Sequence record: PV231353.1
Reading direction: 5' to 3' (one strand)
DNA length: 64,000 nt
Made by a program: the position numbers and the translations under genes. Under the pieces are notes generated by a model. The model made no database searches. It saw only the letters and a program-made list of their open reading frames with translations, and was not told the origin of the DNA. Of this stretch, positions 3,001-63,451 are shown piece by piece (the first letter of the stretch is position 1; the number at the start of each line of letters is the position of its first letter).

Positions 3001-3167
3001 TGGAACTGAAGGGCGCCGGCGGCGGAAGCTCGACCACCGTGGTCTCGCCGATCACCGTCTACGCCAACGACGTCGACAGCTTCCGCCCGGCCCAGGCGCA
3101 GATCGCCCGCAAGCAGAACCGCACCCTGCGCCGCGCGGCCTTGCGCAACGCCTCGATGGTCAACTAG
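1..3167 (+). CDS. Tail tape measure protein, 3' part (5'-truncated by window), with embedded CHAP/TIGR02594-like peptidoglycan hydrolase domain
   Basis: Frame open from position 3. Ala/Gly/Leu-rich helical sequence with typical C-terminal 'GFKEGG...HYAEG...AIVHPDEAVIPL' segment; internal 'SWCAAFVN...GDIVV...GHVGF...LGGNQ' motif; lies directly upstream of distal tail gene. Confidence 0.9.
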   Translation, partial: AELGKELGKDWGKALDYAGTRQSIVNGALKSAAGDSATPQGASDKLTEAALAQMKAADQQALAAADLKDATANFKKDLEPLNFNDLFKRASALADGSFARTAAASKPGGVMASPAVATQQTAATIKTVMASMGDRVYATAGQHLGQTEAKDAASLQAYFKANGVTIDPKKLSWCAAFVNAVLAQNGLSGSGSLAASSFKDYGDEVSRTDARKGDIVVLKPQAAGATGHVGFLDGFDRHGNVRVLGGNQGAAGGGGVNVSTFASNQVVSFRRTGSGGASNFQGGGITEAQGEEGGSLYERRMNMVKALGTITGQASPAADAISEYQSSLEKLRDVLVFEEGLAKKVGPEFQSIFNAKVLEETVAAQKKWNRSIVEALNPIAKESRTLAEANDVLQLRAKGLSQEADWQERLTELRNSGINVDLMQDEAKWTQYLNELKKQGLEIDVKALQLKPDELRYQQGRAEALQAELDLTKALNDAKLAGIARTGSSYDRTLSGLVAGKGRDGETLDQTRQRLAGSVGSDGRSALEALQEQAGVMEGSRMADVKASMQSQLEIMRESARLNNTQRGIYDDYRNILGELLNKQGASLKELLDSADEETKRLAQSFVRAKADFENPPGFQKWADSLEPLDKRLQDIKANFLDNFSGGITDALLGEKVDWKAMLHDTFKQMLRAQVDEGLKSLTYKLLGQGGDQGAAQTPEAQALVSAADVQLQAGNSLQQAAASLMQAAQTTATAGAGGGLGVMTGGPAMGGLGGLLGGGGAMGGGGGLGALAGVLGGGDGTATNPFSIADSILSPLVVDQTGGPGFQAAGAALQGLNITPPGGGGFLSGLGSMFQGGLGSMLQGALSFAGPLLGGLLTGGKKSPKTPASYRMPGGVIGQASTNSVSGRVVGPKQNLIGSLANLGFQLFAGGMGGGGGLMSMFGMGGAGGAGSFIGFKEGGLTGAPVNRYTVSSLGSMFANAPHYAEGTSNTKLANGGMPAIVHPDEAVIPLSRGRNVPVELKGAGGGSSTTVVSPITVYANDVDSFRPAQAQIARKQNRTLRRAALRNASMVN

Positions 3168-3250
3168 CTGTCACCCACGACAGTCGTGAATCTTGACGTT
3201 CCTGGATGATCGTGGCATCCAGGGACACCTCCTTTCATGGTTAATGCCCG

Positions 3251-3901
3251 ATGCCGAGCTTCCACGACGTCCTGTTCCCCGAGACCATCAGCTACGGCTC
3301 GTCCGGTGGTCCGAAGTTCAAGACCACGATCTTCCAGGCCGACAGCGGCTTTGAGCAGCGCAACAAGGACTGGAGCGACATCCGCTGCGAGTACGATGTC
3401 GCCCAGTCGATCCGCTCGACCGAGGACATGGACGAGCTTCGCGCCTTCTTCATGGCCCGCAACGGCCGCGCCCACGGTTTCCGCTACAAGGACTGGGGCG
3501 ACTTCCGCCTCAAGAACCAGTTGATCGGCGTCGGCGACGGCGTCACCAAGGTCTTCCAGATCGTCAAGACCTATACCAGCGTCGCCCACGACGGCACCGA
3601 GTACACCTACACCCGCACGATCCGCAAGCCCAAGTGGGACTCGATCGCCGGCGTCAAGGTCGGCGCCGTGGTTCAGGTCGCCCCGACCAACTACGAGGTC
3701 GACTATTCGACCGGCCTGATGACCTTCGTCACCGCGCCGCCGGCCGACGCCCCGGTCACCATTGGCCTGGGCGAGTTCCACGTCCCCGTCCGCTTCGACA
3801 CCGACTTCATGGACGTCACCCAGGAGTTCTGGATGCGCGAGACGTGGCCCAACATCCCGATCGTCGAAATCCGTGACTGGCAAGAGGCCCTGACGCCGTG
3901 A
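3251..3901 (+). CDS. Distal tail protein (DUF2460/TIGR02217, GTA-like)
   Basis: 'FHDVLFP..ISYGSSGGP.F.T.I...SG.EQRN..W' and 'VPVRFDTD' motifs; synteny. Confidence 0.9.
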   Translation: MPSFHDVLFPETISYGSSGGPKFKTTIFQADSGFEQRNKDWSDIRCEYDVAQSIRSTEDMDELRAFFMARNGRAHGFRYKDWGDFRLKNQLIGVGDGVTKVFQIVKTYTSVAHDGTEYTYTRTIRKPKWDSIAGVKVGAVVQVAPTNYEVDYSTGLMTFVTAPPADAPVTIGLGEFHVPVRFDTDFMDVTQEFWMRETWPNIPIVEIRDWQEALTP

Positions 3902-5523
3902 AATCCGTCCCCGATGACCTGATGGCGCACCTCCAGGAGGAGGTGACCACGCTCGCGACGTGCATCACGATCGTGCGCCAGGACGGCAAGGCGTTCTTCA
4001 TGACCGACCACGATCGGCCGATCAAGTTCGAGAACCAGACCTACGTCCCCTACGACTCCTACCAGCGCACGTCGATCCTGATGTCGTCGGAACTGGAAGT
4101 CGACACCGCCGACATCACCGCCTTCCTGACCTCGAACGGGGTGACGCGCGACGACGTGGCCTCGGGCCTGTTCGACTACGCCGCGATCAAGGTCCAGTTG
4201 CTGAACTACGAGCGGCCCGAGGACGGGGCGATCCTGCTCCGCAAGGGCACGTTCGGCGAAGTGACCATGAACCAGGACGAGACCTTCTCGGCCGAAATCC
4301 GGGGCATGACCCAGGTCCTGACCTACCGGGTCGGGGAGACCTACGCGCCCGAGTGCCGGGCCGACCTGGGCGATCGCCGCTGCAAGATCGGCCTGATGCC
4401 TGAGGAGTGGCAGGCCAACAAATACTACGGCCTCGACGCCTGCGTGCTGGGCGAACTCGTCGCCCCTACGTCGTTCGTCAATCCCGTGGTCGTCAACGGC
4501 AACTTCGAGGACGGCGCCCTCAACGCCGTCGTCACCGCGCCGACGGGCTGGGTGGCCTATGGCGATCCGACCAGCCGCTGGGTCTACAAGCACGACTGGT
4601 ACAATCTGTCGCGCCCGCAGGTCGGCAACCAGTTCATCGCCGCCACCCGCACCTCGATCTCCGACAAGCAGGAAGTCGCGGGCATCTACCAGGACATCAA
4701 CCTCATTTCCGCCGGCGTGCCCGCCGCCGCGATCGACGGCGGCCTCTGCCGCGTGCGCTACAAGTCCTTCGCCGCCTGCCTCAACAACCGCGCCCAGTCG
4801 CGCGAACGCCTGACCTGCATCAAGGCTGACGGCTCGGTGGAGACGATCTGGGACACCGGCGAGATCAAGTACCCCGAGGACCGCTGGATCGCGGTCAACG
4901 CCGATGACATCCTGATCCCGGCCGGCACGCGTGTCCTGCGCATCGACCTGTGGTCCAAGAAACGCAGCGTCCACGAGGAGGGCGCGGCCTATGATGGGAT
5001 CAGCCTGTCGATCAACCTGCCGGCAGGCACCGCCGGCAACGCCCATGTCTATGGCGGGGTGATGTTCAAGTGCATCCAGGCGGGGATCAGCGGCGGCACC
5101 CAGCCGGCCTGGACTAACGAACTGGGCGCCACCTATACCGACGGCACGGTCATCTGGCAGTGCGTGGCCAACTACAAGAAGGTGGGCACGGTCGCCACGG
5201 TCGCCTCCAACAAGTCCTTCACCTCGACCGACATCACCGAGCCGGCCGGTCACTACGACGGCGGCGTGCTCTACTGGGAAACCGGCCGCAACGCCGGACG
5301 CGCCCAGGAGATCAAGACCTGGGCCGCCAACCTCTTCACGCTTTTCCAGCGCACCTACTATCCAATCACGGCGGGCGACCGCTTCGTGGTCTATCCCGGC
5401 TGCGACAAGCGCCGCGCCACCTGTGCCGACAAGTTCCACAATATCCACAATTTCCGCGCCGAGCCCGACGTGCCCGGTCAGGACATCTACTACCGCACGC
5501 CCAACGCTCCGGAGCAGGAATGA
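3898..5523 (+). CDS. Baseplate hub protein (DUF2163/BR0599-like) with large internal insertion
   Basis: N-terminal 'TLATC..I.R.DG...TDHD..I' and C-terminal 'GCDK...TC..KF.N..NFR.EP.VPG' motifs; GTGA overlap with upstream gene. Confidence 0.88.
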   Translation: MKSVPDDLMAHLQEEVTTLATCITIVRQDGKAFFMTDHDRPIKFENQTYVPYDSYQRTSILMSSELEVDTADITAFLTSNGVTRDDVASGLFDYAAIKVQLLNYERPEDGAILLRKGTFGEVTMNQDETFSAEIRGMTQVLTYRVGETYAPECRADLGDRRCKIGLMPEEWQANKYYGLDACVLGELVAPTSFVNPVVVNGNFEDGALNAVVTAPTGWVAYGDPTSRWVYKHDWYNLSRPQVGNQFIAATRTSISDKQEVAGIYQDINLISAGVPAAAIDGGLCRVRYKSFAACLNNRAQSRERLTCIKADGSVETIWDTGEIKYPEDRWIAVNADDILIPAGTRVLRIDLWSKKRSVHEEGAAYDGISLSINLPAGTAGNAHVYGGVMFKCIQAGISGGTQPAWTNELGATYTDGTVIWQCVANYKKVGTVATVASNKSFTSTDITEPAGHYDGGVLYWETGRNAGRAQEIKTWAANLFTLFQRTYYPITAGDRFVVYPGCDKRRATCADKFHNIHNFRAEPDVPGQDIYYRTPNAPEQE

Positions 5524-5945
5524 CCCGCGACGACATCGTGACCGAAGCGCGCCGCTATGTCGCGCTCCAAACCCCCTGGCGCCATCGAGGCCGCACCGAA
5601 CGCGGCCTCGACTGCATCGGGCTGGCCGTCATGATCTTCGAAAAGTTCAACCTGGAGTATATGGACCAGGACGGCTACGCGCGCACGCCCGACGGTGAGA
5701 AGTTCGTCGACGTGATCCGCCAGCACATGACCCTGGCCGATCCGACCGCGCTCAAGCCGGGCATGCTGCTGTTGTTCAACGACGATGCCCGGCCCTGTCA
5801 TGTCGGCATCCTGGCGCGCCAGCACGGGCGCCTGACCCTGATCCACGCGACCGCCGACAAGAAGCGGACGGTCGAGGAAGTCTATGACCGCCGCTATGCC
5901 GCCCGGTTCCGCATGGCCTTCGATTTTCCCGGCGTTGAGGACTAA
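5520..5945 (+). CDS. NlpC/P60 family tail-associated peptidase
   Basis: ATG at 5520 overlaps previous TGA; 'TPWRHRGR...GLDCIGL' and 'HVGI...LIHA' Cys/His motifs. Confidence 0.9.
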   Translation: MTRDDIVTEARRYVALQTPWRHRGRTERGLDCIGLAVMIFEKFNLEYMDQDGYARTPDGEKFVDVIRQHMTLADPTALKPGMLLLFNDDARPCHVGILARQHGRLTLIHATADKKRTVEEVYDRRYAARFRMAFDFPGVED

Positions 5946-5947
5946 TC

Positions 5948-8900
5948 ATGGCCGCCGCCATTGCCCTTCCGATCGTCTCCGCCATCGTCAGCACGGCGAT
6001 CAGCTACGCCTTCCCGAGCGATGGCCCGCGCCTGCGCGACACCAAGGTCTCGGCCTCGACCTACGGCAACGTGATCCCGGAAATCTACGGGACCGCGCGC
6101 GTCGGCGGCAACATGATCTGGTCCAAGCCGTTCACCGAGAAGAAGAAGAAGAAGCGGGCCGGCAAGGGCGGCTCCTACTACAACGAATACACCTACTACT
6201 GCGACTTCGCCATGGCCTTCTGCCGGGGGCCGGTCAAGGAAGTGCGCCGCATCTGGGCCGACGGTAAGGTGATCTATGACACCACCGGCGGCTCGGAGGT
6301 GATCGACAACAACAAGTACCGCTTCCGCTTCTATCCCGGCGACGAGACGCAGCTTCCCGACAGCCTCATCGTCGAGGACAAGGGCGCCGATTACGCCCCC
6401 GCCTACCGGGGCCTCTGCTACGTCGTGTTCGACGACTTCGCCCTGGCCGATTTCGGCAACCGCATCCCGCAGATCATGGCCGAGGTCTATGCCGGAGACG
6501 AAGGCGGCGCGGCGATCACCGACATCGTCCCGCTGCCGAGTTCGCCGGTCACTGGTGGGTCCTATCAGCTTGGCCAGATGATGATCGACGCTGACCGGGG
6601 CTATTTCTACCTCGTCGATTCGGTGTCCAACCCGGCAGGCACCGTTCTGCGCCGCTTCCTGCTGGCGAACGGCAAGGAGGATCGGCGCGAAATCGTCTCG
6701 ATCCCGCAGACCCAGTTCCCGCCCTCGGTCTATGACAGCCCCGATCTGACCTCGGTCCGGGCCGTCACTTCCAAGGGCGAGCTTCTCTGCGTCTTCGGCG
6801 GGGTCAACAACTACATGCGGATCGAGAAGCTCGATCCCTATTCCTGGCAGTCGCTGGGGACGATCGGCCGCAGCTATCCCTTCGCGGGCACGCCCGAAAA
6901 CAGCCTGGAGCACTCCAACACCAACTTCGAGATTTCGCGGGACGAGAAGGGCAACTATCTCTGCCTGACGCTCGGGGTGTTTGGTGAGTACAACATCTTC
7001 GATCCCTCCGACATGTCGTTCAAGGCTAAGGGCGAAATGGCGGGCTGGGGTGGTCCGGGCACGCCGATGTACATCTGCGCCCGCCAGGGCGGCTCGGCGG
7101 CCTCCCGCCGCTTCTACCACGTCACCTATACGGGCGGGGCGTCCTTGCAGGTGTGCAGCCTGAACGAGGTGCTCTACAATCATCCGCTTGATCATCCTGG
7201 AGATTCCCAGACCGCGACGTCCTGGGCCTTCTGGGACGAGGGCGATCCGGGGGTGGTCTTCTTCTATTCCGACGGCCCCAACCGCTACATCGCCAAGTGG
7301 TCCGAATCCACCGGCGTGCTGGCCTGGAAGACCCAGCTTCGCAACTCCGATCCGTTCTGCGGCTATGGGGTCTATGGCCTGCGCGCCCGGATCAAGGACA
7401 ACGAGTTCCACTGGGTCTACAACAAGCACCTGTTCTCGATCAACACCGCCACGGGGCAGTGGATCGACCGGACCTTCGACCAGGACTTCTACAAGAGCGA
7501 CAACGACAAGACCGCCGAACAGGTCAACGACGGCGACAAGGGCCTGCTGCTGCCGCGCGACATCTCCGAGGACTATGTCATCTACGATCCGCGCCGCAAC
7601 ATCGTGATTTGCGTCGGACAGATTCAGGGCCAAAACGGCATCGTCCACGTCGGCGGCTATACGGGCGGCAAGACCTCGGTGGGGGCCATTGTCGAGCGTC
7701 TTCTGGTCTCGACGGGGCAGATGACCTCGAACGACTACGACCTGACGCCGCTCTACGACATCCCGGTCTACGGGTACGGCTACGCCTCCTCGACCGACAT
7801 CAAGTCGATCATCGCCGAACTGCGCAACCTCTTCATGTTCGACCTCGTCGAAAGCGACGGTCGACTGGTCGCGCGCGTGCGCGGCGATCAGGACCCTGAC
7901 GCCGAGGTGCCCTGGAAGCTCCTGGGCTCCCAGAGCGGCCCGACCCCGGACAAGGCCGACTACTGGAAAGAGACCCGGATGTCGGAGTCCGATCTTCCGG
8001 CCTCGATCGACCTGACCTATTCGAACATCGACGACGATTACAACCCGTCGACGGCCAAGTCCAAGCGGATCGCCTCGCCGGTGGCGACCATGCTGTCGCG
8101 CCAGCAGGTCAAGGCCGAGTGCAACCTCGTCATGGACGCGACCGAGGCCAAAAACCGCGTCAACATCATGCTCTACACCCAGTGGGAGGAGCGCACGCAG
8201 CACCAGACGGCCCTTCCCTGGCTCTACGCCAATCTCGACGCCTCGGACCTGATCTCGGTGACCATGGAGGACGGCCGCAACTACTTCGAGCGGATCGGCT
8301 CGATCGAGTTCGGCGCCGACTTCTCCTCGCGTCTGGAAACCTACGGCACCGACAGCGGCGCCTACCTTTCGGACAAGACCGGCGACGGCGGCGGCGCTGG
8401 GCGGCCCACGGTCGTGCCGGCCCCCAAGCCGGTGGTGGGCTTCATCCTCAACACCCCGTTGCTGCGCGATACCCACGACAGCGGCGGCAACTTCTCCAAC
8501 TGGTATAGCGCCATCGGCGCCGGCGCGCCGGGCGTGTTCCTCGGCGGCACGATGTTCAAGTCCGCCAATTCGCAGGACTACGTTGATCTCTACCAGGAGC
8601 CGGAGAGCGCCGAGTGGGGCACCGTGATGGGTGTCGTGCCCTCGCCCTCGCACGGCTGGTTCGCGCTCGACTGGGAGACGCGCATCACCATCACGCCGGC
8701 GGTCGACTTCTTCGAACTGGAATCGATCACCGACGACGAGCTTTGGGAAGGCCTCAACCTCGTGATGATCGGCGACGAGGTCCTCCAGTTCCGCGACGCG
8801 GTGCAGAACGCCGACGGCACCTGGACGATCTGGAATCTGCTGCGCGGGCGCCGGGGCACGCAATATGCCTGCGACAATCACAAGGCCGGCGAGCGCTTCC

Positions 8901-36365: not shown

Positions 36366-38070
36366 TTACAGGCGCCAGTGGCGGCCGTTGAAGGTGATCA
36401 GCGCCCGCTTGCCGTTCGGGTACTGCACGCAGTGGGTGTGCGCCCAGGACGAGGGGCCGGTGTTGTAGCCCATGTCCAGCTTCGAGGTCGTGCCGGTGTT
36501 GTAGGCGCTCTCGAAAATGCCGGGCGAGTGAGTGTGGCCAAACGTAGTCTTCGGGCCGATCTTGGCGAACTGCTGGATGTTGCCGCGCGAGCCGTTGGCG
36601 CCGTTGTGACCGTGGTTGGAGTGCTCGACCCCACCGACGACGCAGGATTCGTCCTCGCGCAGGAACTTCACGCCGTTGCAGTTCCAGACGTCGAAGGCGT
36701 TGGTCATCACCTCCTCGAAGATCGAGAAGTTCTTCTCGCCGGTCCGGATCGAGGCGTAGACCGCCCGCTGACAGGTGAGGAAGAACTCGGCATTGACCGG
36801 GTCGGCGCGGTAGTCGGCCGTCTTCAGCCACTTGTTGAGCGCCAGATCGTGGTTGCTCTCAACCACCGTGACCTTCGAGTCCGGGGCCTGCCGACCCAGG
36901 ATGGTCAGGAACATCGCCACCTCGCGCAGTTCCTGCTCGACGCTTTCGGAGCCCTTGACATAGAGCCGGAAGCGGTCGTGCGGATCGGCGATGTTGTGGT
37001 GGTTGCGCGCCCGGAAGTCGGAGACGTCGTGGACGAAGATGTGCTCGGGCCGCAGGACGTCGATCATCGACGGCGTCGCCACGCTGCCCCACACCCGGCT
37101 CCCGTCGGCCGAGCGCTGCTCGGTCGGGAAGAAGCCGAAGGTGGCGGCCGAGACCTCGGGATCGATCTGCGCCACGTGGACGTCGCCGGGCGTCAGGCAG
37201 GCCACGCGATGGCCCTCGGTGACCACGCCGTCCTTGACGAAGACGTCCAGGTCGTAGAACGAGCCATCGGTGTCGCCCAGAAGGTGGCGGCAGAAGAACT
37301 TGCCGTCCTCGTCGACCTCGACCAGCACCGCGCCCAACTGGTGGTGGAAGCTGGCCTTGATCCCGGCCTTCTTGGGGACGTAGTTCGGCTTGGTGACCGC
37401 GCCCGTCGTCATGATCTGCTTGGACGGGGTGTGCTTCATCGTCGGAACGCTGACGAGTTGCACCTTGGCGTGGGGGAAGATGCCCCAGCGCTCGCGGGTG
37501 TAGGAGTGGAAGCCCGACAGCGGATTCTCGGCCGTGGGGAGGGTGTTCATCTCGCCGCAGAAGTCGATCCGGTCGGCGATCCGCACGCGCTCGGCGACGA
37601 GGTATTCCATCACCCGCTTGTGGAAGAACGCCGCGTGCTTGGCGTGGTCCTCGAACAGGCGCTTGGAGTAGGTGAAGCCAGCGATCATGATCTCGCACGG
37701 CGCGTCCTGGCGCAGGTGCTCGGCATAGGCCTCCAGGTTGTCGACGAACTCCTCGTGGATGTGCGTCGAGATCCTGGGCCGAGGACAGGATGAACCGCCG
37801 GCGCCCGGTGGTCTCATCCACCGGCACGGTCCGGGCGGCGGGCGCCGGGCGGTGCGACAGCGGGTCCTTGCGCATCGAGTAGAGGCGGTTCTGGAGCGTC
37901 GTGCGCTTGACGCTGTACTTGCGCGAGAACGCCCGTTGACCGCCGGCCTTCTTGACCATCGCGTTCAGTTCTTCCGGCGACACCGAGTAGATGTCGAACG
38001 GACCCTCGGCCGGCAGGGCGGCCTTGGGCTTCTTGCCCGCCTTGGAAGCGTGTTCGAACTCAGCCGGCAT
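36366..38070 (-). pseudogene. Calcineurin-like metallophosphoesterase with N-terminal HTH, interrupted by a frameshift near 37770
   Basis: N-part MPAEF...ILSSAQD (from 38070) continues in a different frame as STHIHEEF; motifs GDVH, HD, SNHD, HGH, GHTH. Confidence 0.75.
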
Positions 38071-38761
38071 AGAGAAGCTCCGGTTTGGCGCTGACCGGCT
38101 TGGACCACGACCAGACGTACCAAGCATAGGCGAAGCGCGGGGCGCCCTTGGTGCCGGCGATCCAGCGGGGGCGGTGACGAAGGGTGACCTTCGCGGTGAA
38201 GGCGGGGTGATCGAACAGGTCCGCGCGCGAGCGCGCCGCGTCCCATTCGTGGCGGCAGAGGAAGGCCACAAGGCCCTGGTCGGCCTCCATCAGGTCCAGC
38301 GCGTGGCGCGCGGCGCGCTCGGCGTCCTTGCCGTAGGGCGGGTTGGTGACGATCGCGTCCGGGCGCGGCGGCAGCGGCGTGTTCTTGCGCTCCTCGCCTT
38401 TCTCGTCGACAACCGTCTCGGGGCGGGCCTTCAGCGCGCCCAGGCGGTCGAGGTCGGCCGGTGTCAGCTTGAAGAAGTCCTCGACCGCGTCGACCTCGAA
38501 GCCCTCGTAGCGGTGGATGTCCGTGGCGAGGACCTCCTGCACGAAGGGCTTGAGCGGCGTGGCGATGGCGCCGTTGCCGGCGAAGGGCTCCCAGGCGAAG
38601 AACGGGGCGAAGTCATCGCCCAGGGCCTCGATCAGGGCGTCGAAGGCCGGCCGAGGAGTCGGGTAAAAGTCCAGCGGGGTCCTGGCATATCCGGAGGCGC
38701 CCAGCATGGAGGGGTCTTTGCGACCAGCATCGGAGAGAGACATGGTCGTGAGGGATGTCAT
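38060..38761 (-). CDS. Putative N6-adenine DNA methyltransferase
   Basis: 'DFYPTP', 'EPFAGNGAI', 'TNPPY'. Confidence 0.8.
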   Translation of the reverse strand: MTSLTTMSLSDAGRKDPSMLGASGYARTPLDFYPTPRPAFDALIEALGDDFAPFFAWEPFAGNGAIATPLKPFVQEVLATDIHRYEGFEVDAVEDFFKLTPADLDRLGALKARPETVVDEKGEERKNTPLPPRPDAIVTNPPYGKDAERAARHALDLMEADQGLVAFLCRHEWDAARSRADLFDHPAFTAKVTLRHRPRWIAGTKGAPRFAYAWYVWSWSKPVSAKPELLYAG

Positions 38762-38791
38762 GGTTAACGAAGGGTGTCAAGATTCACGACA

Positions 38792-38820
38792 TTGACTGTC
38801 GTGACGCAGCACGTTAATCA
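38792..38820 (+). promoter_or_regulatory. Sigma70-type promoter for the ROOL-like RNA
   Basis: TTGACT-N17-TAATCA, divergent from the methyltransferase promoter. Confidence 0.7.
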
Positions 38821-38829
38821 GGAGGCAAC

Positions 38830-39446
38830 GGGCCGTCCTTCTGCATTAGCCCCGCCGTCGCGCCTTCCAGGCGGCACGGGCCGGGACGGTGGTTGGTGAC
38901 GAGCAGGCCGAGGCAGCGGCGGGCGAGTCGAAGGAGAACCCGGCGAGCGGCGGAAGGCGTCGTTGACGCCCTCGGACTCGACAAGCACGGGGTGATGCCG
39001 GAAATCACCGCGATCGCGCGGACGTCTGGACGTTGCTAGGCGTAAGGCAGGCCTGCCGAGAAGTGGAAACGGCCGGGGCGGGCGGGACTTGATCTCGTCC
39101 GCCTTTCCGCCTAAGCTTCCCTCATTGCAGGCGCAGCACCGCCCTTCGCTAACGGCCCCGAGGGGTACGCAAGGGCTAGAAGCCTTGCCTGGGACAGGAC
39201 TGCCTCTGATCCAGGAACGCCCTGGGCCGCGTAGCGCCCATGACGCGAACGCCGGCCGAGAATGGGCGACTAGGCGTGACGGCGGCCAGAGGCCGCAGCG
39301 ACATTCCAAGCTCGATAGAGCGATCGGCGGGCCGGGGCGAAAGCCCTGTTTCGAGAGCCAGGGCAACCCGTCATAGGTCCTGGTCGGGCGACGAGGCAGC
39401 AAGTCCCGCGAACGGAGCCTCTGAGGCGGCGTCACCAAGATGCAGC
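38830..39446 (+). ncRNA. ROOL-like large ornate RNA (core 38893-39438)
   Basis: Perfect 9-bp closing stem TTGGTGACG/CGTCACCAA; ordered blocks GTTGCTAGGC..AAGG, CTAAGC..TCATTG, TAGC..C..GACGC, TTCCAA, CTGTT..GAG.GC, ATAGGT resemble ROOL as recalled; own promoter and terminator. Confidence 0.7.
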
Positions 39447-39451
39447 AGACG

Positions 39452-39486
39452 CAAAAAGGCCCCGATCGCGAGATCGGGGCCTTTTC
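39452..39486. terminator. Bidirectional Rho-independent terminator
   Basis: aaaaaggccccgatc-gcga-gatcggggcctttt. Confidence 0.9.
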
Positions 39487-39490
39487 ATGT

Positions 39491-39579
39491 TGGAGCTTCG
39501 GGAGGGACTCGAACCCTCATAGGTGTTCCCACCAGCAGAGATTTGCAATCCCGCGCCTAACCTCTCAGTCCACCGAAGC
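39491..39579 (-). tRNA. tRNA-Cys(GCA) with long variable arm
   Basis: 7-bp acceptor GCTTCGG/CCGAAGC, U73, encoded CCA, T-loop TTCGAGT, anticodon loop TTGCAAA, variable stem GGTG-GGAA-CACC. Confidence 0.9.
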
Positions 39580-39626
39580 ACAAAAGGACCTCGACGCCCG
39601 AAGGCCCGAGGTCCGATCCGTAACCA

Positions 39627-39754
39627 GGGGAGGGCCGTAGCTGTCCCCTGACCCTGAACGACAGGTGGCGGGCTTGGTCGTCATCCCGTCAGGCTCGCGG
39701 CGCCGCTCGCCTGAACCGCCGATATGCCACGAGGGCAGTGATCCGCAGGTCCCC
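39627..39754. ncRNA. ~128-nt rod-shaped RNA, 6S-like candidate
   Basis: GGGGA/TCCCC ends, stem-bubble-stem architecture, GTCCCCTGA and CCTGAACC blocks; hairpins on both sides; strand unresolved. Confidence 0.35.
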
Positions 39755-39763
39755 ATAAATAGC

Positions 39764-39798
39764 AAAAAGGCCACGATCCGCGAGGACCGTGGCCTTTT
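39764..39798. terminator. Bidirectional terminator
   Basis: aaaaaggccacg...cgtggcctttt. Confidence 0.85.
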
Positions 39799-39804
39799 CG
39801 TTTT

Positions 39805-40676
39805 CCGATGGGCTGAGACTACACCCATCAGCAATCCCGCTTCGAGGATTATTCCCCAGGTGCGACCCCAGGTATTCCCTCGACGTCCACCAGACCCCTT
39901 GCGGTAGTCCAGTCCGAGATCATCGCCGCCGTTCTTGCGCACCCCGAAGGGATTGCGGGTCTGGCGTTTGACCCATCATGGCGAACTACTCGACAGTTCC
40001 TTCCCCGCTGGGCTTGCGACCCACTCACCGGCGCTAACCGGCTGACGAAGCTCTTCCTATCGACACCTCGCGGGCTTGCGACCCTTGAGATGACTCCGTT
40101 ACCCGAAGGCCGGAGCATTTGGCGACTTACGTCCGCCACTGGACCAGTCTTTGCGTTTTTCATCGAAGCGGGGATTGAACCCGCGACCGACAGCTTAAGA
40201 GGCTGTTGCACTACCACTGTGCTATTCGCAAACCCACCAAGACGTGCTGGTCCAGTTGTTCCCAGAGCTTTTGACCCCAGAAATGCAACACGCCTCATAT
40301 CTTTCGCCTTGCGGGCTACTCGACTGCTCTTCAGGACCCCGTCTCCCCCAACCTTTCGGCCAGGATGCCCAGCACCCCTCGAACTGAAGCAAAGCTCTTC
40401 ACCGCGAAGTGTCGAACCCTGCAACCCAAACGGTTATCCGTACTCCCTAGACACGCTTGCACGGGATAGTCCGCTTGCGACGGACTGGCGGTTAAAGCCT
40501 CGGAGTTACCCCGGCCCCGCCTTGTCTCCCACGGTCTTCAGGTCTATCCCCTTTTGCAAGAGGCGGCCAGCTTCCCAGCCCGGACCCGTCGGCTTCCTCT
40601 GTCCTCTTGCGAGGTCGGGCGGCCTATGGGAGACCGTCCCTGTCACCCCGTCGCCGGGGCTTTCGTCAGAAGCGAC
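39805..40676 (-). ncRNA. GOLLD-like giant ornate RNA
   Basis: About 870 nt between a promoter and a terminator; many GNRA-capped hairpins on the minus strand; 3' blocks GAGUAGUUCG, AGGGAAUACC, GAAUAAUCC, GUGUAGUCUCAGC; tRNA body inserted in the middle. Confidence 0.7.
40161..40231 (-). tRNA. tRNA-Lys(CUU)-like body embedded in the GOLLD-like RNA (degenerate acceptor, no CCA)
   Basis: Intact D arm GCAC/GTGC, anticodon arm ACAGC-CTCTTAA-GCTGT, T arm GCGGG-TTCAATC-CCCGC; only 4 contiguous acceptor pairs. Confidence 0.8.
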
Positions 40677-40682
40677 GATGAC

Positions 40683-40711
40683 GTTCTAGCGACAGCCAAA
40701 GTCGTCGTCAA
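40683..40711 (-). promoter_or_regulatory. Sigma70 promoter for the GOLLD-like RNA
   Basis: TTGACG-N15-GCTAGAAC on the minus strand, matching the Caulobacter sigma70 consensus. Confidence 0.8.
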
Positions 40712-40767
40712 CGACTTTTTTCGTCTCGCCCTCGAAATTTTTCGACAGTCGTGGGTGACGACAGTGC

Positions 40768-40796
40768 TTGACATTCTCGGAGCCGCGTGCTAGGTG
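40768..40796 (+). promoter_or_regulatory. Sigma70 promoter for tmRNA/tRNA transcript
   Basis: TTGACA-N17-TAGGTG (GCTAGG). Confidence 0.75.
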
Positions 40797-40799
40797 TCG

Positions 40800-41175
40800 G
40801 AAATCGTTGTAATTCGGACAACGGAACTGGCGGCAAGACAGGGGTGCGAATCCCCTCGCCTCCACCATCGACGCCCGGCGCTGGGAGTACGCGACTCCTG
40901 GGCAGGGAGTGTTACCCTGGCGGGCTGCGGCCCGAGCCAAAGGTAGCCGGGCGTCGTTGATGGGGGCGACTAGCTTTCGATTGGCGCTCGGGACTGAAAG
41001 ACGCAACGGTGGGTGACCTCCACATCGGCTTGCCGGTGATCGGGTCAGGCAACAGTAAATGTCGCCGCCAATGACAACGACGTCGTGGCTTTCGCCTCGG
41101 CTCGTGAAGCCATCGCCGCCTAATAAGCGGTAGAGGAGCCCGCCGGGAGCTTGGCAACAGAATCCCGGCAACCCC
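40800..41175 (+). ncRNA. ssrA: Two-piece (permuted) alphaproteobacterial-type tmRNA
   Basis: Acceptor piece ends CGCCTCCACCA (40867); coding piece starts GGGGGCG (40962), giving G3:U70; tag frame 41061-41123 VAANDNDVVAFASAREAIAA*; inter-piece helix CGGCAAG/CTTGCCG. Confidence 0.93.
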
Positions 41176-41304
41176 CTTTCGCAGGCGGGAACACCAACAG
41201 GCGATCTGTCGGGCGACCGATTTCCGATCCGTGTTCCCGTCTTCGAAAGGTGGTCAGGCCTACCCTCTTGGTGTGCTATCCAAGGGTCTGGCCACTTTAC
41301 AGAA

Positions 41305-41383
41305 CGCGGGGTAGAGGAGTCCGGTTGTCCTCGTCTGGCTCATAACCAGGAGATCGTGGGTTCAAATCCCACTCCCGCTCCCA
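41305..41383 (+). tRNA. tRNA with CAU anticodon (Met; fMet-like C1:U72 mismatch)
   Basis: Cloverleaf, anticodon loop CTCATAA, encoded CCA; lacks the three consecutive anticodon-stem G-C pairs of initiators. Confidence 0.9.
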
Positions 41384-41388
41384 ATGCG

Positions 41389-41651
41389 AACGCCGGCTGT
41401 TGAGAACGACGGCGTGACAAGCTCGGAGAGAACGAGCACTCCAGTCCGGGGTATGAGGCCGGACTAGCGGACGCCGTAGCGATTGCAGGCGTGACACCCG
41501 GAGATAGCGGGACCGATTTTCCAGGCTCCATGCCCGGCGCGTCGGGGGCGGACAGTTAATCCGCCCGGCGTCAGAGGATGAGGCTAGTTCTCGGCGATGA
41601 AGCTGCGCGCGCAGTGAGAAAGCCAGGGCATGGCGCTTGGAAAGTCGGTTC
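41389..41651 (+). ncRNA. Unassigned structured RNA region (hairpin array plus long multibranch stem)
   Basis: Four or five tandem hairpins at 41389-41505; long stem GACCGATTTTCCA/TGGAAAGTCGGTT and CCATGCCC/GGGCATGG at 41511-41650. Confidence 0.45.
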
Positions 41652-41667
41652 GCGGTTCGTCCGCTAC

Positions 41668-41748
41668 GAGATGGAGATGTCGCCGGTTCGAGTCCGGCAG
41701 GTCCCCCAAAAGGAGGCCTTAGCTCAGTCGGTAGAGCGCTCCTATCCC
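41668..41748 (+). ncRNA. Circularly permuted tRNA-like element (YrlA Y-RNA-like architecture)
   Basis: Order T arm (GCCGG-TTCGAGT-CCGGC), acceptor stem closed by a CCAAAA loop, TA, D arm (GCTC-AGTCGGTA-GAGC), closed by GATGGAG/CTCCTATC. Confidence 0.7.
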
Positions 41749-41754
41749 ACCTTT

Positions 41755-41839
41755 GGTACGGTGGCTCGACAGGTAAGGCATCGGCCTCATAAGCCGAGGG
41801 TTCGTCCCAATCCTGGTTCAAATCCAGGTCGTACCTCCA
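41755..41839 (+). tRNA. tRNA with CAU anticodon (Met or Ile2) and extended variable arm
   Basis: Acceptor GGTACGG/TCGTACC, U73, CCA; anticodon arm TCGGC-CTCATAA-GCCGA; 14-nt variable region GGGTTCGTCCCAAT. Confidence 0.88.
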
Positions 41840-41911
41840 AATTGACGCTTGACCCCAGGCCGCAGGCTGCTAAGCTTCCCCGGTCGGGATCGTCCCGCGT
41901 CCTTTCCAAGG

Positions 41912-41945
41912 TCAAGCCCCCGGAGCCTCGCTTCGGGGGCTTTTC
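41912..41945 (+). terminator. Rho-independent terminator
   Basis: aagccccc-gg...tc-gggggctttt. Confidence 0.8.
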
Positions 41946-42297
41946 AGTTCTTGACCACCCGCAGGCGCCGGGCCTCGTTGGCGCGCTCCTCCGCCGCCAC
42001 GCGCGAGACGTCTTGCAGATGCGCCTTGGCGATCAGGTCGGGCGCGCCCACGGCCCGGAAGGGCACCTTGACGGAGAGGTCAACATAGCGCCGCAAGAGC
42101 GGCTCGAACTCCAGGCCTCGCGCCTGGGCGATCCGCGACAGTGCGCCGGCGACGATCGCCACGACCAGGACGTTGGTCGGTGTCTCCTTGGTCAGGGTCC
42201 AGATGCCCGGTATAGACTGCCCAGGATGAAGTTCCTGCCGCGCCACGTCATCGGCGGCGGCGCGGAAGAGGTTCTCGTAAGGGACGTTTTCGAGCAT
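41944..42297 (-). CDS. Hypothetical protein
   Basis: ATG 42297 with upstream GAGGG; coding-like. Confidence 0.65.
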   Translation of the reverse strand: MLENVPYENLFRAAADDVARQELHPGQSIPGIWTLTKETPTNVLVVAIVAGALSRIAQARGLEFEPLLRRYVDLSVKVPFRAVGAPDLIAKAHLQDVSRVAAEERANEARRLRVVKN

Positions 42298-42376
42298 ACG
42301 ACAACGATAGCGATCTTTTGCCGCCTGTCTACCCTCTACTCTTGATAGTAGTAAAGCCCCGATTTCAACATAAGAG

Positions 42377-42763
42377 CTAAAGCCGTCCGCCGTAATAGTC
42401 CCGCCACATTCCCTCCCAATAGTCGATGTGCTTCTCGGTGCAGTCCGGGCAATACCGACGGTCCCGGTTGGGGTCCTCGCCCTTGCCATCCCAGTGGTAG
42501 CAGGTCATTGAGCCGACCATCCCCAGGCGCCAGAACGTCCCGCAGTGTTCGCATCCCCCAAGGGCGATGTTCTGCATCGTCCGGTGGTGGTTCCACTTGC
42601 AGAGCCAGTTGAACCAGAGTTCATAATAGAGGGCGTCGCGGATGCTGCTGTACTGGGTGAGGCGGACCTGAACGACCTTGCGCCGGCCGTTAGGCTTCAG
42701 GTCGCGGTCATAGGTCGGCCTGTAGAAGACCTTGATCTTCGGGAACCAGCGGCGCTTCTTCAC
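42377..42763 (-). CDS. Hypothetical protein with two CxxC motifs
   Basis: GTG start overlapping helicase stop; 'CEHC', 'CPDC'. Confidence 0.6.
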   Translation of the reverse strand: MKKRRWFPKIKVFYRPTYDRDLKPNGRRKVVQVRLTQYSSIRDALYYELWFNWLCKWNHHRTMQNIALGGCEHCGTFWRLGMVGSMTCYHWDGKGEDPNRDRRYCPDCTEKHIDYWEGMWRDYYGGRL

Positions 42764-44706
42764 GTGTCCATGACCCTTGCGATATTGTCCTCCTTCTCCT
42801 TGGCGGCCTGGGCGATGCGCGCGTCGAGCGAGCCGTTCGCCACCAGGAAGAAGCACATGATTTTCTCGGCCGTCTGCCCGATCCGGCAGGCGCGGTCCTC
42901 GGCCTGCTCGATCAGGGTCGGCGTCCAGTCCCCCTCGGCGAACGCCACGTCGTGCGCCCGCGTCATGGTGAAGCCTACACCGGCGGCCTGGAGGTTGCAA
43001 ACGATGACCCGGCAGGACTCGTCGTCCTGGAACTTGTCGACCTGAAGCTGGCGCTTGTTGACGGGGGTCCCGCCATAGATCATCGCCGGATTGTAATCCG
43101 CCAGCGCCTCGGCGAGCGCCTTGACGACGTCGGAGTGGTAGGCGAACAGGATCAGCTTGTCGCCGCCGTCGAGGAAGTTCTTGACCCAGGGAATGATCGC
43201 CGGGAGCTTGGCCATCCCCAGTTCACGGCGGACGGCGGCGATCTCCTCGAAGAGCACCGCCACGGCCGGCGGCGCGAGCCCCAGCACGGCGGCGGCGTAG
43301 TCGAGATTGAGCGCCCGCGAGTTGGGCTTGTCAGGATCACCGTCCTGTCCCACCGCCTTGTCGAAGCCGTAGCGCTGGGCCGTCTCCAGGATCGACAGAC
43401 CCAGGCGGATGTCGCGCTGGTCCTCGGTCTCGTTCTCGCCGGCCAGCACCGTGGCCTCGTAGAGCTTCAGCGCCTGGGAAAGCTCGTCCTCGCGCGCCAC
43501 GACCTCGCGGATTTCCGGGCTGTCGAGGAGGACGATCTGGCGGAACTTCGGCGGAAGCTCGGGTAGCACCTCGCGCTTGTTCCGCCGCACCATGAAGGTC
43601 GAGCGCAGCCGATAGCCCAGTTCCTCCAGGTTGGAGGCCCCGGTGAAATTGTAGGCGCCGTGCTTGCCACGCGTGTTGTCGAACCAGCCGTCGCAGTAGC
43701 GGTAGCCGAAGTCGTTATAGCTCTTCCCCAGGCCGTCGGGATCGAAGGCCTTGACGATCGACCACATCTCGATCGGGCGGTTCATCATCGGCGTGCCCGA
43801 CAGGAACACGCGGCGCTTGGCGTCGACCGGGTTGAACCAGATGTCGGCCAGCACCGGCTCGCGGTTCTCGGCCTCGGCCTTCTTGATCTCGGCGGCGTTG
43901 GCTTCCTTGCGCTTCTTGCGCACCGCCGCCTTCGAGCGCGCATCCATCTGCTCGCCGCCGAGGATGAAGATCGTGCGCCCGCTGTCGGGGGTCTTGATCG
44001 CGTGACATTCGTCGCAGACCAGGAGGTCCCACGGCTGCTCGTGGATTTCCTTGGAGAAGCGCTCCAGGATGTCGTAGTTGATGATCACGACATCGGTCTT
44101 GGGCCACCAGCGCGGGTGGACGACCTTCTTGAAACGCGGCTTGCCGTTCTTGTAGAAGCCGTCGCGCACGGTCTCGCGATAGCGCGTCTCGGCGATCCCG
44201 ACGCTCAGGCCCTTGCTGCACCAGAGCAGCCATTCGCGCCGCCAGTTCTCCTTCAGCGAGGCGGGGACCACCACCAGCACGCGGCGGATTTTCTTGATCG
44301 CGTTGGAGACGCCAATCGCCTGGATCGTCTTGCCCAGACCCGGCGGATCGGCGATCAGGGTGTCGCGCCGCCCCGGCAGGGTGGCGAAGTCGATCCCGGC
44401 GCGCTGGAAGGGCTTGAAGTCCCAGCCCTTGGCCTCGACCGCCTTGGAGATCGGCGGCCAGAAATCACAGTCGGCCTTGTAGGACAGCGCCCGGCTGATA
44501 TTGGCCAGATGCTCGCGGCGCCCCAGTTCGTCGAGCGCGTTGCTCTTCCAGACCACGCCGGGCACTGCCAGGGCTACGGCCGGGTTGTGGGTGATCAGCG
44601 CCCGGCGCGGCGGGCTCCAGGTGAAGCCGGCCTCCTGGAACCGCTTGCGGTCTTCCCATTCGGTGACGGCCCAGAAGTAGCCGTCGCGATAGTCGATAAA
44701 AGCCAT
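42760..44706 (-). CDS. SNF2/HARP-like helicase
   Basis: 'AD.PGLGKT', 'VPASLK.NW', 'DECH', 'LSGTP..N', 'G.GF...RA', 'QAEDRACRIGQ'. Confidence 0.93.
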   Translation of the reverse strand: MAFIDYRDGYFWAVTEWEDRKRFQEAGFTWSPPRRALITHNPAVALAVPGVVWKSNALDELGRREHLANISRALSYKADCDFWPPISKAVEAKGWDFKPFQRAGIDFATLPGRRDTLIADPPGLGKTIQAIGVSNAIKKIRRVLVVVPASLKENWRREWLLWCSKGLSVGIAETRYRETVRDGFYKNGKPRFKKVVHPRWWPKTDVVIINYDILERFSKEIHEQPWDLLVCDECHAIKTPDSGRTIFILGGEQMDARSKAAVRKKRKEANAAEIKKAEAENREPVLADIWFNPVDAKRRVFLSGTPMMNRPIEMWSIVKAFDPDGLGKSYNDFGYRYCDGWFDNTRGKHGAYNFTGASNLEELGYRLRSTFMVRRNKREVLPELPPKFRQIVLLDSPEIREVVAREDELSQALKLYEATVLAGENETEDQRDIRLGLSILETAQRYGFDKAVGQDGDPDKPNSRALNLDYAAAVLGLAPPAVAVLFEEIAAVRRELGMAKLPAIIPWVKNFLDGGDKLILFAYHSDVVKALAEALADYNPAMIYGGTPVNKRQLQVDKFQDDESCRVIVCNLQAAGVGFTMTRAHDVAFAEGDWTPTLIEQAEDRACRIGQTAEKIMCFFLVANGSLDARIAQAAKEKEDNIARVMDT

Positions 44707-50694: not shown

Positions 50695-50821
50695 GGCAAA
50701 CTCCGAAAGGCAGGCTTGAGTGAATGTGTTGCCGATCCTTCTAGCGAGGCGTTCTGGCTCTGTCAACACACTCCAGCCTGCCGGGATGTCGTGAATCTTG
50801 ACGTTCCGCGACGCCTGAGGC

Positions 50822-62868: not shown

Positions 62869-63088
62869 TCGATCTTGTCGAACTTCGCCGATCCGAAACC
62901 GGGGCTTCCCGGCGACCGCCTCGGAGTTCGACCTTGTAGCGCCTCTAACGCTTGCCCCGCGTCGCGGCTTGGGAGCACCGAGCCTTGACGCTGATCTAGT
63001 GGGCGGCAGGTGATCGCGGCGGTCATTGCCTCCTTCAAGGGCGAGGCCCTCTCATGCCCGCGCAGCTTAGGCGGCGGCGCGGATCACG

Positions 63089-63451
63089 TCAATCCCCCGG
63101 ATAGCTGGCGCAGACCTCGCGCAGGATAGAGCGCAGCGGCTCGCCCGGCACCGCCAGGGGCTTGAGCTTGCGGCTCTCGTCCCAGGCCATGGCGTTGGCG
63201 TGCAGAAGCCAGAGCACGAAGGCGCGCAGGTCCTTGACCCCGTCGGGCAGCGGGATGCCGCGCGCGGTGGGGACGTGGAAGACCCGCCCATCATCCGTGT
63301 ACGCGAGAACCTCGTCGAGCACCGTGGCCCGCTTCTTGGCCTCGGCGAGGACAGCGACACCTTTCTGGAATTCGCTGACCTGGATGAGCGCCCGGCGCTC
63401 CTTAGGGAAGTGGGTCTTGGTCCACCAGGAGGGCTTGCTGTTTGAGGACAC
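63089..63451 (-). CDS. Hypothetical protein (start uncertain)
   Basis: Coding-like from about 63390. Confidence 0.5.
   Translation of the reverse strand: MSSNSKPSWWTKTHFPKERRALIQVSEFQKGVAVLAEAKKRATVLDEVLAYTDDGRVFHVPTARGIPLPDGVKDLRAFVLWLLHANAMAWDESRKLKPLAVPGEPLRSILREVCASYPGD

Follow-up and report, generated by a model that had tools for sequence, protein, structure and literature searches.

Results

Layout of the island in RBC57 and its relatives

The stretch of DNA analysed here (the window, 64,000 nucleotides) is identical (100%) to the last 64 kb of the genome of Caulobacter phage RBC57 (PV231353.1), a phiCbK-like siphophage. Our subject is a 3.1 kb segment of it, positions 38790-41945 (∼183.2-186.4 kb of the RBC57 record), which is probably an island of RNA genes conserved in the phiCbK-like phages (Dolichocephalovirinae). 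An earlier, sequence-only reading of the window had described this segment as a protein-free island that carries ROOL-like and GOLLD-like RNAs, a transfer-messenger RNA (tmRNA), a permuted tRNA mimic and atypical tRNAs, with at least eight structured RNAs altogether; we found at least 11 structured RNA elements.

In RBC57 and its close relatives, the island lies within the replication module and is flanked by a DNA methylase gene and by a block of small genes and a helicase gene. Across this region RBC57 shares 96-98% identity with Karma, phiCbK, Ccr10, Magneto and Swift and ∼90% with BL57, and in the Poindextervirus group (Rogue, BL10 and RBC8) only a third of the region can be aligned to RBC57. 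The same layout was found in the distant phages Colossus and PW, in the Brevundimonas phages Bajun and Kabachok and in the metagenomic contig L019. In the comparison of synteny and covariation among relatives, which the sequence-only reading had proposed as a check, the layout recurred and compensatory base pairs were present in the four RNAs designated below as A1, A2, B and G.

Absence of protein-coding genes

No credible coding sequence was found in 38790-41945, as had been proposed. None of the nine open reading frames (ORFs) of 106-255 aa located in or overlapping the island had a match in Pfam. The sole PHROG match inside the island (phrog_13461, E = 1.7e-100) was given by a 206-codon ORF on the minus strand (38818-39438), and the members of phrog_13461 are annotations of this very ORF from sister phages. 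Comparison of this ORF with phiCbK, Ccr10 and Magneto, all of them close relatives, revealed frame-breaking indels of 1 nucleotide (nt). Its substitutions were distributed over the first, second and third codon positions as 4, 11 and 12 with respect to phiCbK and as 16, 27 and 22 with respect to Magneto, without any excess at the third position, and the homologous segment of BL57 and Rogue has stops in all three minus-strand frames. The ORF has been annotated at five lengths (582, 573, 591, 513 and 414 nt) and is left uncalled in the annotations of RBC57 and BL10. Minus-strand ORF calls in databases that overlap RNA genes (38818-39438 and 41584-41709) comprise Karma gp130, phiCbK gp128 and RBC57 XTP78829.1, and the label 'DNA transfer protein' in RBC8 and BL64 likewise overlaps RNA genes.

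The tmRNA and three tRNAs

A permuted two-piece tmRNA is encoded at 40805-41214 on the plus strand (RF04321, 71.4 bits against a gathering score of 47). ARAGORN also reported a permuted tmRNA, at 40775-41214 and with the tag VAANDNDVVAFASAREAIAA, so that this label of the sequence-only reading was borne out by two methods. The tag reading frame closes with two stop codons and the acceptor piece ends in CCA. In these two features and in its permuted order the RNA resembles the two-piece tmRNAs of Alphaproteobacteria (RF04321, RF01849), from which it differs in being phage-encoded, in being kept across the whole phage subfamily and in being part of a single transcription unit that also includes tRNAs and new RNAs. 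A tmRNA was found in all relatives examined; public records annotate it in phage Bajun and count it in phage Shash.

Rfam and ARAGORN together gave four tRNA-model matches in the island, one of them the tRNA-like arm of GOLLD described below. The other three confirm the atypical tRNAs of the sequence-only reading. These are a tRNA-Cys (GCA) of 89 nt with a long variable arm and encoded CCA (39491-39579, minus strand; detected by ARAGORN and by the Rfam tRNA model at 33.8 bits, and supported by its fold), an initiator-like tRNA (CAT) of 79 nt with encoded CCA (41305-41383, plus strand) and a second tRNA (CAT) of 85 nt, again with a long variable arm and encoded CCA (41755-41839, plus strand), the latter two being recognized by Rfam, ARAGORN and fold. 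The initiator-like tRNA has an enlarged D arm (5-bp D stem and 9-nt D loop) and a mismatch at 1:72. All three show the features of decoding-type tRNAs (RF00005), namely a cloverleaf, conserved anticodon and U33, a 7-bp acceptor stem and CCA. When compared among seven or eight distant genomes (eight for tRNA-Cys), anticodon and U33 were invariant and the rest of the loop was near-invariant, while the stems carried compensatory changes; by this pattern of substitution the three behave like decoding tRNAs. As in the tRNA arrays of large phages, the tRNA genes are clustered with structured spacers, but in RBC57 the tRNAs are few, atypical and outnumbered by non-tRNA structured RNAs. The spacer between the tmRNA and the initiator-like tRNA (41215-41304, plus strand) is predicted from its sequence alone to form a long imperfect hairpin. 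A 14-nt string of the tmRNA 3' part (41129-41142) reappears within the initiator-like tRNA, where it is located in the D arm (41310-41323) and matches at 13 of 14 positions.

Promoters, terminators and predicted transcripts

Five promoters were recognized in the island. Promoter P1 (38792-38819, plus strand; TTGACT, a 15-nt spacer and GTTAATC) is invariant in nine phages and fits the Caulobacter RpoD consensus, quoted in PMC8144410 as TTGaCgS and GCtANAWC; its -10 element in phiCbK reads CGCTAGAC. P2 (39089-39114, plus strand), in which CTTGA and CTA are invariant in nine phages, P3 (40768-40793, plus strand), which precedes the tmRNA and tRNA transcript, and P4 (41849-41873, plus strand), conserved in Shapirovirus and BL57, were detected as pattern matches, as was the GOLLD promoter (40686-40711, minus strand), which reads TTGACGA followed by GCTAGAAC and also fits the RpoD consensus. 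For the pattern TTGAY-N16-17-CTAR, 0.53 matches would be expected in the 64 kb and six were found, four of them in the island (39089+, 40711-, 40768+ and 41849+), P1 at 38792 being of the same build. The three promoters and the fourth candidate proposed earlier (38792+, 40711-, 40768+ and 41849) were thereby all recovered and a fifth, at 39089+, was added. The remaining two matches in the window are located at 50741-50766 and 63067-63092 on the minus strand. A scan for E. coli-type sigma-70 promoters detected none of the island promoters. Judged by their sequences, the five promoters fit the host RpoD type, and for this reason the host polymerase would be expected to transcribe the island from them, on both strands and early in infection.

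Nine terminator-like hairpins were found against 4.4 ± 2.1 expected, in keeping with the several terminators that the sequence-only reading had postulated, and the sign of the GC skew matches the assigned transcript strands, being positive across region A (described below) and -0.2 across GOLLD. A short RNA of ∼65 nt at the end of the island (41880-41945, plus strand; folding z-score -3.9, with a compensatory change in BL57) ends in a terminator that it has in common with a convergent gene. Division of the transcripts into individual RNAs would be brought about by tRNA-processing enzymes and hairpins, with cuts at tRNA ends, hairpins and the GA motif (see below).

Structured RNAs of region A and RNAs B and G

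Region A (38790-39490) consists of invariant islands alternating with stems that carry compensatory changes and contains the internal promoter at 39089, from which we conclude that it holds two RNAs. The first, A1 (38826-39088, plus strand; ∼260 nt), would have its 5' end where P1 places it, and 26 of its 69 predicted pairs were changed on both sides with pairing kept among seven phages. A weak GA-motif-like element is present in its 3' part, and R1, the covariance model of the GA motif, gave weak matches in Rogue and BL57 at the corresponding place. The second, A2 (39121-39487, plus strand; ∼365 nt), includes GA motif copy 1 and is closed by a bidirectional terminator (39455-39487); 19 of its 98 pairs showed compensatory changes, a number that was reached in none of 500 shuffles (mean 9.8), and slid controls gave 2-5. 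Single-sequence folding of region A yielded z-scores of about -1.8 on both strands and was thus not informative.

Region A has the size of the ROOL-like RNA that the sequence-only reading had assigned to the island without coordinates. No match to ROOL (RF03087) was obtained at E ≤ 10 in 38000-42800, nor at E ≤ 10 when 38810-39495 (686 nt) was searched alone with laxer filters. There was no gathering-score match in the whole window, and among the relatives none was seen in four at E ≤ 0.5 or in six at the gathering score. Where ROOL is a single RNA of ∼580 nt with a nested multi-pseudoknot fold, region A has promoter 39089 and two independently folding RNAs. The island hence appears to carry no ROOL RNA, and this label, one of five, was wrong, as was the claim built on it that ROOL and GOLLD are carried together.

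RNA B (39580-39762, minus strand), a conserved small RNA upstream of tRNA-Cys, ends in a hairpin at 39586-39607 and has 16 of 39 pairs with compensatory changes among Shapirovirus, Poindextervirus and Bajun. RNA G (41511-41651, plus strand) is formed by a closing helix of ∼30 bp and a conserved apical hairpin. In a 297-nt alignment that spans it, eight of 69 pairs were changed on both sides, five of them in the closing helix (141, 142, 149, 153 and 154). Taken by their patterns of conservation, A1, A2, B and G appear to be lineage-specific structured RNAs, and A1 and A2 seem to belong to an undescribed family.

The GA motif

The GA motif is an element of ∼65 nt with two hairpins that occurs in the island, in tandem arrays of relatives and in unrelated viral contigs. 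Hairpin 1 has the stem ACGCC/GGCGU and a variable loop, with a GA flank on its 5' side and another on its 3' side, and two G-A pairs could therefore stack on the stem. It is followed by a C and by hairpin 2, a freely covarying stem whose loop contains AGAG. Copy 1, in which hairpin 2 has an AGA loop, is located at 39236-39300 (plus strand; R1 82 bits, with covariation). Copy 2 (41377-41441, plus strand; R1 17.9 bits, E = 7e-5 in the island search) starts at the 3' end of the initiator-like tRNA and is conserved in seven phages, and copy 3 (41456-41515, plus strand; R1 8.5 bits, E = 0.036) is divergent, its Rogue ortholog scoring 20 bits. Further elements that resemble the motif are carried by GOLLD at its 5' end and by A2 at its 3' end. 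Every convincing copy (E below 0.01) is on the transcribed strand of the island, and the three matches elsewhere in the window had E-values of 0.5-0.7. No Rfam family overlaps any copy of the motif.

Colossus, PW, Bajun and Kabachok, phages with little other DNA in common with RBC57, share with it a 55-nt core of A2 at 83-93% identity. In these phages the core is present in three or four copies spaced 225-265 nt apart, and a TTGAC promoter or tRNA-Cys comes after each copy. The motif directly adjoins a promoter or the 5' end of tRNA-Cys in Colossus, PW and L019. GA-motif units number two in RBC57 and three to four in Colossus and PW. Contig L019 (IMGVR_UViG_3300033068_001629, 960-7100) holds at least nine copies of the motif over ∼4 kb, in the same order as in the island, i.e. 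GA-motif units, tRNA-Cys, tmRNA and two tRNA-Met. In phage PW only, a 198-codon ORF (gp171; L005 5232-5825) has been annotated between two GA-motif units.

Among 13 sequences of the motif, 97% of the cells were paired and five of 11 pairs were changed on both sides, and none of 500 shuffles reached the observed value. The corresponding figures for 52 distinct sequences, an alignment fitted to the model whose outside members were pre-selected by sequence pattern, were 96%, nine of 11 pairs and again none of 500 shuffles. Searching bacterial genomes and metagenomes with an exact pattern of the GA core mostly returned chance-like matches without flanks and hairpin 2, only L019, L056 and perhaps L070 looking real. 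A looser pattern scan of IMG/VR gave 85 loci, and 24 of the 73 new ones hold convincing copies, R1 giving 26 matches in 24 unrelated viral contigs. The hairpin 2 stems of these outside contigs are complementary, although the pattern did not demand it. tRNA genes are present at nine of the 24 outside loci, mostly on the strand of the motif and several within ∼20 nt of it. Examples of outside copies are L103 5440-5509, L081 22-77, L131 1157-1225 and L128 6756-6813, with 20 further IMG/VR loci, and other outside copies sit between small ORFs. BLAST searches with two outside copies gave no match among isolate phages. In these sequences, the GA motif marks the 3' parts of A-type RNAs and follows the initiator-like tRNA.

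A GOLLD RNA with an exchanged anticodon loop

The GOLLD-like RNA of the sequence-only reading was substantiated by a full-length match of the conserved 3' domain (39810-40296, minus strand; RF02032, model positions 1-416 of 416) with 169.4 bits against a gathering score of 150 and E = 8e-46. Continuous with it is a variable 5' domain (40297-40679, minus strand), which is conserved in Shapirovirus and BL57 and begins with a GA-motif-like element (40626-40673; R1 15.9 bits). Covariation analysis of the 5' domain revealed no firm structure, the Bajun sequence being too divergent to align. With the ∼380 nt up to the promoter at 40711, from which its 5' end is placed, and a terminator hairpin of 17 pairs found by hairpin scan (39763-39800, minus strand), the RNA would be ∼900 nt long. 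It resembles the RF02032 family in its 3' domain, variable 5' domain, tRNA-like element in the linker, phage context and nearby tRNA genes. RBC57 differs from the family in having an alphaproteobacterial host clade, a linker arm with a shortened acceptor stem and a loop swapped between sister phages, and a promoter and terminator of its own, the promoter of host type; nor is GOLLD universal in the phage subfamily.

The tRNA-like arm in the linker (40159-40232, minus strand), annotated as tRNA-Lys CTT, matches the Rfam tRNA model with 56 bits at model positions 4-67 only. Only four Watson-Crick pairs make up its acceptor stem, CCA is missing, and the anticodon loop is located at 40195-40201. 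The body of the arm is identical in five phages and the anticodon loop is swapped, being Lys-CUU in RBC57, Karma and Magneto and UCC without U33 in phiCbK, Ccr10 and BL57. RBC57 and phiCbK differ by 10 substitutions over the ∼930 nt of GOLLD, and five of these are consecutive bases of the anticodon loop (40195-40201, minus strand). By the standards of decoding tRNAs the arm falls short in its 4-bp acceptor stem, its lack of CCA and its variable loop, and because U33 is lost in phiCbK and BL57, the acceptor stem is incomplete and CCA is absent, it is unlikely to decode.

Rfam searches of the relatives detected GOLLD in Shapirovirus and BL57 and none at this locus in Rogue, Colossus, PW or Kabachok. 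The Bajun GOLLD (L006 6713-7131, minus strand), which has no tRNA in its linker, scored 104 bits (E = 3e-26); as this is below the Rfam cut-off, it would be missed in annotation by gathering score. GOLLD matches in phiCbK, Ccr34 and other phages have already been published by Kretsch et al. (2025; Supplementary File S3), and a published GOLLD alignment comprises 806 sequences. The 2012 genome paper reported no RNA besides tRNAs. The location of GOLLD beside tRNA islands, the presence of a tRNA in its linker and its cage formation have been published (PMC12286853; PMC6582537), a multimeric RNA-only cage having been shown for one GOLLD (PMC12286853), and pseudo-tRNAs inside GOLLD have been reported elsewhere without a decoy role (PMC6582537). 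By homology, the GOLLD of RBC57 may form such a cage as well.

A circularly permuted tRNA-like module

The permuted tRNA mimic proposed earlier was also recovered. In the minimum-free-energy fold of 41660-41754, a module at 41668-41747 (plus strand) adopts the order of closing stem, T arm, loop-closed acceptor stem and D arm, i.e. a circularly permuted tRNA. Between RBC57, Karma, phiCbK and Ccr10 the module does not differ at any position (100% identity), so that these four phages can offer no covariation. It is replaced in Magneto and absent in BL57 and Poindextervirus, and Colossus and PW have a different sequence with the same permuted topology at the same place. Its match to YrlA (RF02553) was weak (29.7 bits, E = 0.0017, gathering score 69) and covered only positions 23-85 of the 114 of the model. 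The order of T arm, loop-closed acceptor-like stem and D arm is as in YrlA, whereas the RBC57 module scores below the cut-off, has no long Ro60-binding stem and has no neighbouring rsr gene in view. The authors of the YrlA study cautioned that two adjacent tRNAs can mimic a YrlA match; in the RBC57 module, however, the two halves pair with each other. In Kabachok a second YrlA-like permuted module (L007 3446-3516, E = 0.12) was observed ∼4 kb upstream of the island. The search with Rfam models, which the sequence-only reading had recommended, thus yielded GOLLD, the tmRNA and the tRNAs as foreseen, left ROOL unmatched and placed YrlA below its cut-off.

Discussion

We consider it likely that the region is an RNA-gene island conserved in the Dolichocephalovirinae, and that this view, joined with the following roles of its parts, is the best explanation of the data. 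The core set formed by the tmRNA and the three tRNAs would sustain translation in the infected cell by ribosome rescue, initiation and decoding. GOLLD would act as in other phages, as a multimeric RNA scaffold that carries its tRNA-like arm, and the GA motif would be a common handle for one protein or for one processing, stabilizing or end-forming step. Several points speak against this interpretation. GOLLD is missing in Poindextervirus, Colossusvirus and Kabachok, and Poindextervirus and BL57 lack the permuted module, from which it follows that the island is not one obligatory machine. Covariation in the island RNAs draws on seven to nine genomes of three or four clades, and the larger alignment of the GA motif was assembled with the model and the pattern as described above. 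The only promoters found are P1-P4 and that of GOLLD, and in RBC57 the synthesis of RNA B and tRNA-Cys would require read-through past two terminator-like hairpins; the ends, processing and timing of the transcripts are as predicted from such signals.

Other explanations of the non-coding stretch fare considerably worse. That region A encodes on its minus strand (38818-39438) a hypothetical protein, the Karma gp130, phiCbK gp128 or 'DNA transfer protein' of RBC8, might be argued from a frame that stays open over 206 codons and from its strong PHROG match, but phrog_13461 is made up of the same annotated ORFs, its annotated lengths are inconsistent where it is called at all, and the compensatory RNA pairs fall on the opposite strand. 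Together with the frame-breaking indels, the lack of codon-position bias, the stops in BL57 and Rogue and the lack of a Pfam match, this led us to reject the coding reading, to which we attach next to no probability. Nor do we give more than a very slim chance to the proposal that the island carries a ROOL-like RNA in addition to the GOLLD-like one: the ∼660 nt between P1 and the terminator and the adjoining tRNA genes, beside which ROOL is often found in phages, would suit a ROOL RNA if A1 and A2 were read as one, yet neither the two island searches at E ≤ 10 nor those of the relatives gave a match, the stretch has a conserved internal promoter and two separately folding RNAs, and Caulobacter entries, of which there are at least 24 in the GOLLD alignment, are absent from the ROOL alignment entries listed. 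Membership of region A in the ROOL family was rejected on the grounds of the missing model match at permissive thresholds and the two promoter-driven RNAs. Alternatively, the island might serve chiefly at the level of DNA, as a replication origin or regulatory region for example, with the RNAs being incidental. Its position inside the replication gene module agrees with this idea, but it has no iteron-like arrays, its conservation tracks RNA pairing with compensatory changes, and its elements are all strand-specific and bordered by promoters and terminators. The origin reading was rejected for want of iterons, and a DNA-level role as the main one appears highly improbable.

Two further proposals concern what the RNAs do. 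The GA-motif RNAs might be Y-RNA-like partners of the Ro60/Rsr protein, the permuted module being their YrlA-type domain. The module does match YrlA weakly and has its topology of T arm, closed acceptor and D arm, and the 5' strand of the GA motif, which reads GGCGAACG in Rogue, BL10 and Bajun, fits the element GNCGAAN0-1G (PMC4201824). However, the YrlA score of 29.7 is far from the cut-off of 69, the copy of RBC57 itself lacks the first G of that short element, which could match by chance, and GA motif and tRNA-like module are separate rather than nested. No TROVE gene is mentioned in the phiCbK genome paper and none was found here, no search having been aimed at TROVE. We regard a partnership with Ro60 as quite improbable, and the sequence link to Ro60 and Y RNAs as only a lead. 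Counter-defence by mimicry is the other proposal, in which the GOLLD arm and the permuted module would attract, as decoys or spare substrates, host nucleases that cleave tRNA anticodon loops, and the tmRNA and extra tRNAs would repair damage to translation. It rests mainly on the anticodon-loop swap and the recurrent tRNA mimics: exchange of the loop between sister phages, with the rest of the arm identical in five phages, would be expected if the arm were a decoy for anticodon-cutting nucleases, the arm is unlikely to decode, and permuted modules recur independently in Colossus, PW and Kabachok. Against it stand the lack of any defence system or nuclease linked here to the arm or the module, the pseudo-tRNAs in GOLLD elsewhere that have no decoy role, the Bajun GOLLD without a tRNA arm and the possibility that one recombination event produced the loop swap, so that we hold this proposal to be possible but clearly less likely than not. 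Bolder, and in our estimation doubtful, is a version in which the island would be an RNA-only kit for counter-defence and translation rescue, built around an undescribed and widely distributed phage RNA motif, with the GA motif defining promoter-driven, fast-diversifying RNAs beside tRNA and tmRNA genes and with the GOLLD arm as decoy.

Returning to the island as a set of conserved RNA genes, its function would be the support of translation, possibly with decoys against tRNA-targeting defence. A coordinated module for translation maintenance or counter-defence, as put forward in the sequence-only reading, is compatible with the content of the island as read from its sequence, since the tmRNA, the initiator-like tRNA and two decoding-type tRNAs are conserved subfamily-wide and the loop of the GOLLD arm is swapped. 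The same reading had held the combination to be undescribed. This stands as far as we could find for the island as a unit, for RNAs A1, A2, B and G, for the GA motif and for the loop swap, the literature having yielded no paper on the island in its entirety or on its other RNAs; it does not stand for GOLLD and the tmRNA, both of which public data already contain for these phages, the former in the supplement of Kretsch et al. (2025) and the latter in the Bajun and Shash records.

The finding implies that phrog_13461 and several 'hypothetical protein' or 'DNA transfer protein' calls in GenBank are mis-annotated RNA genes, and it provides, with A1, A2, B, G and the GA motif, candidate RNA families that are missing from Rfam. 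A phage-encoded two-piece tmRNA accompanied by two conserved tRNAs with long variable arms (Cys and Met anticodons) is unusual for bacterial systems. The structures of GOLLD and similar giant phage RNAs have been solved. With a promoter and terminator of its own and natural loop variants of its arm, GOLLD makes the question of their function approachable in the phiCbK system, for which public time-course RNA-seq of infection exists (PMC10688885) and whose host Caulobacter crescentus is a well-developed laboratory model.

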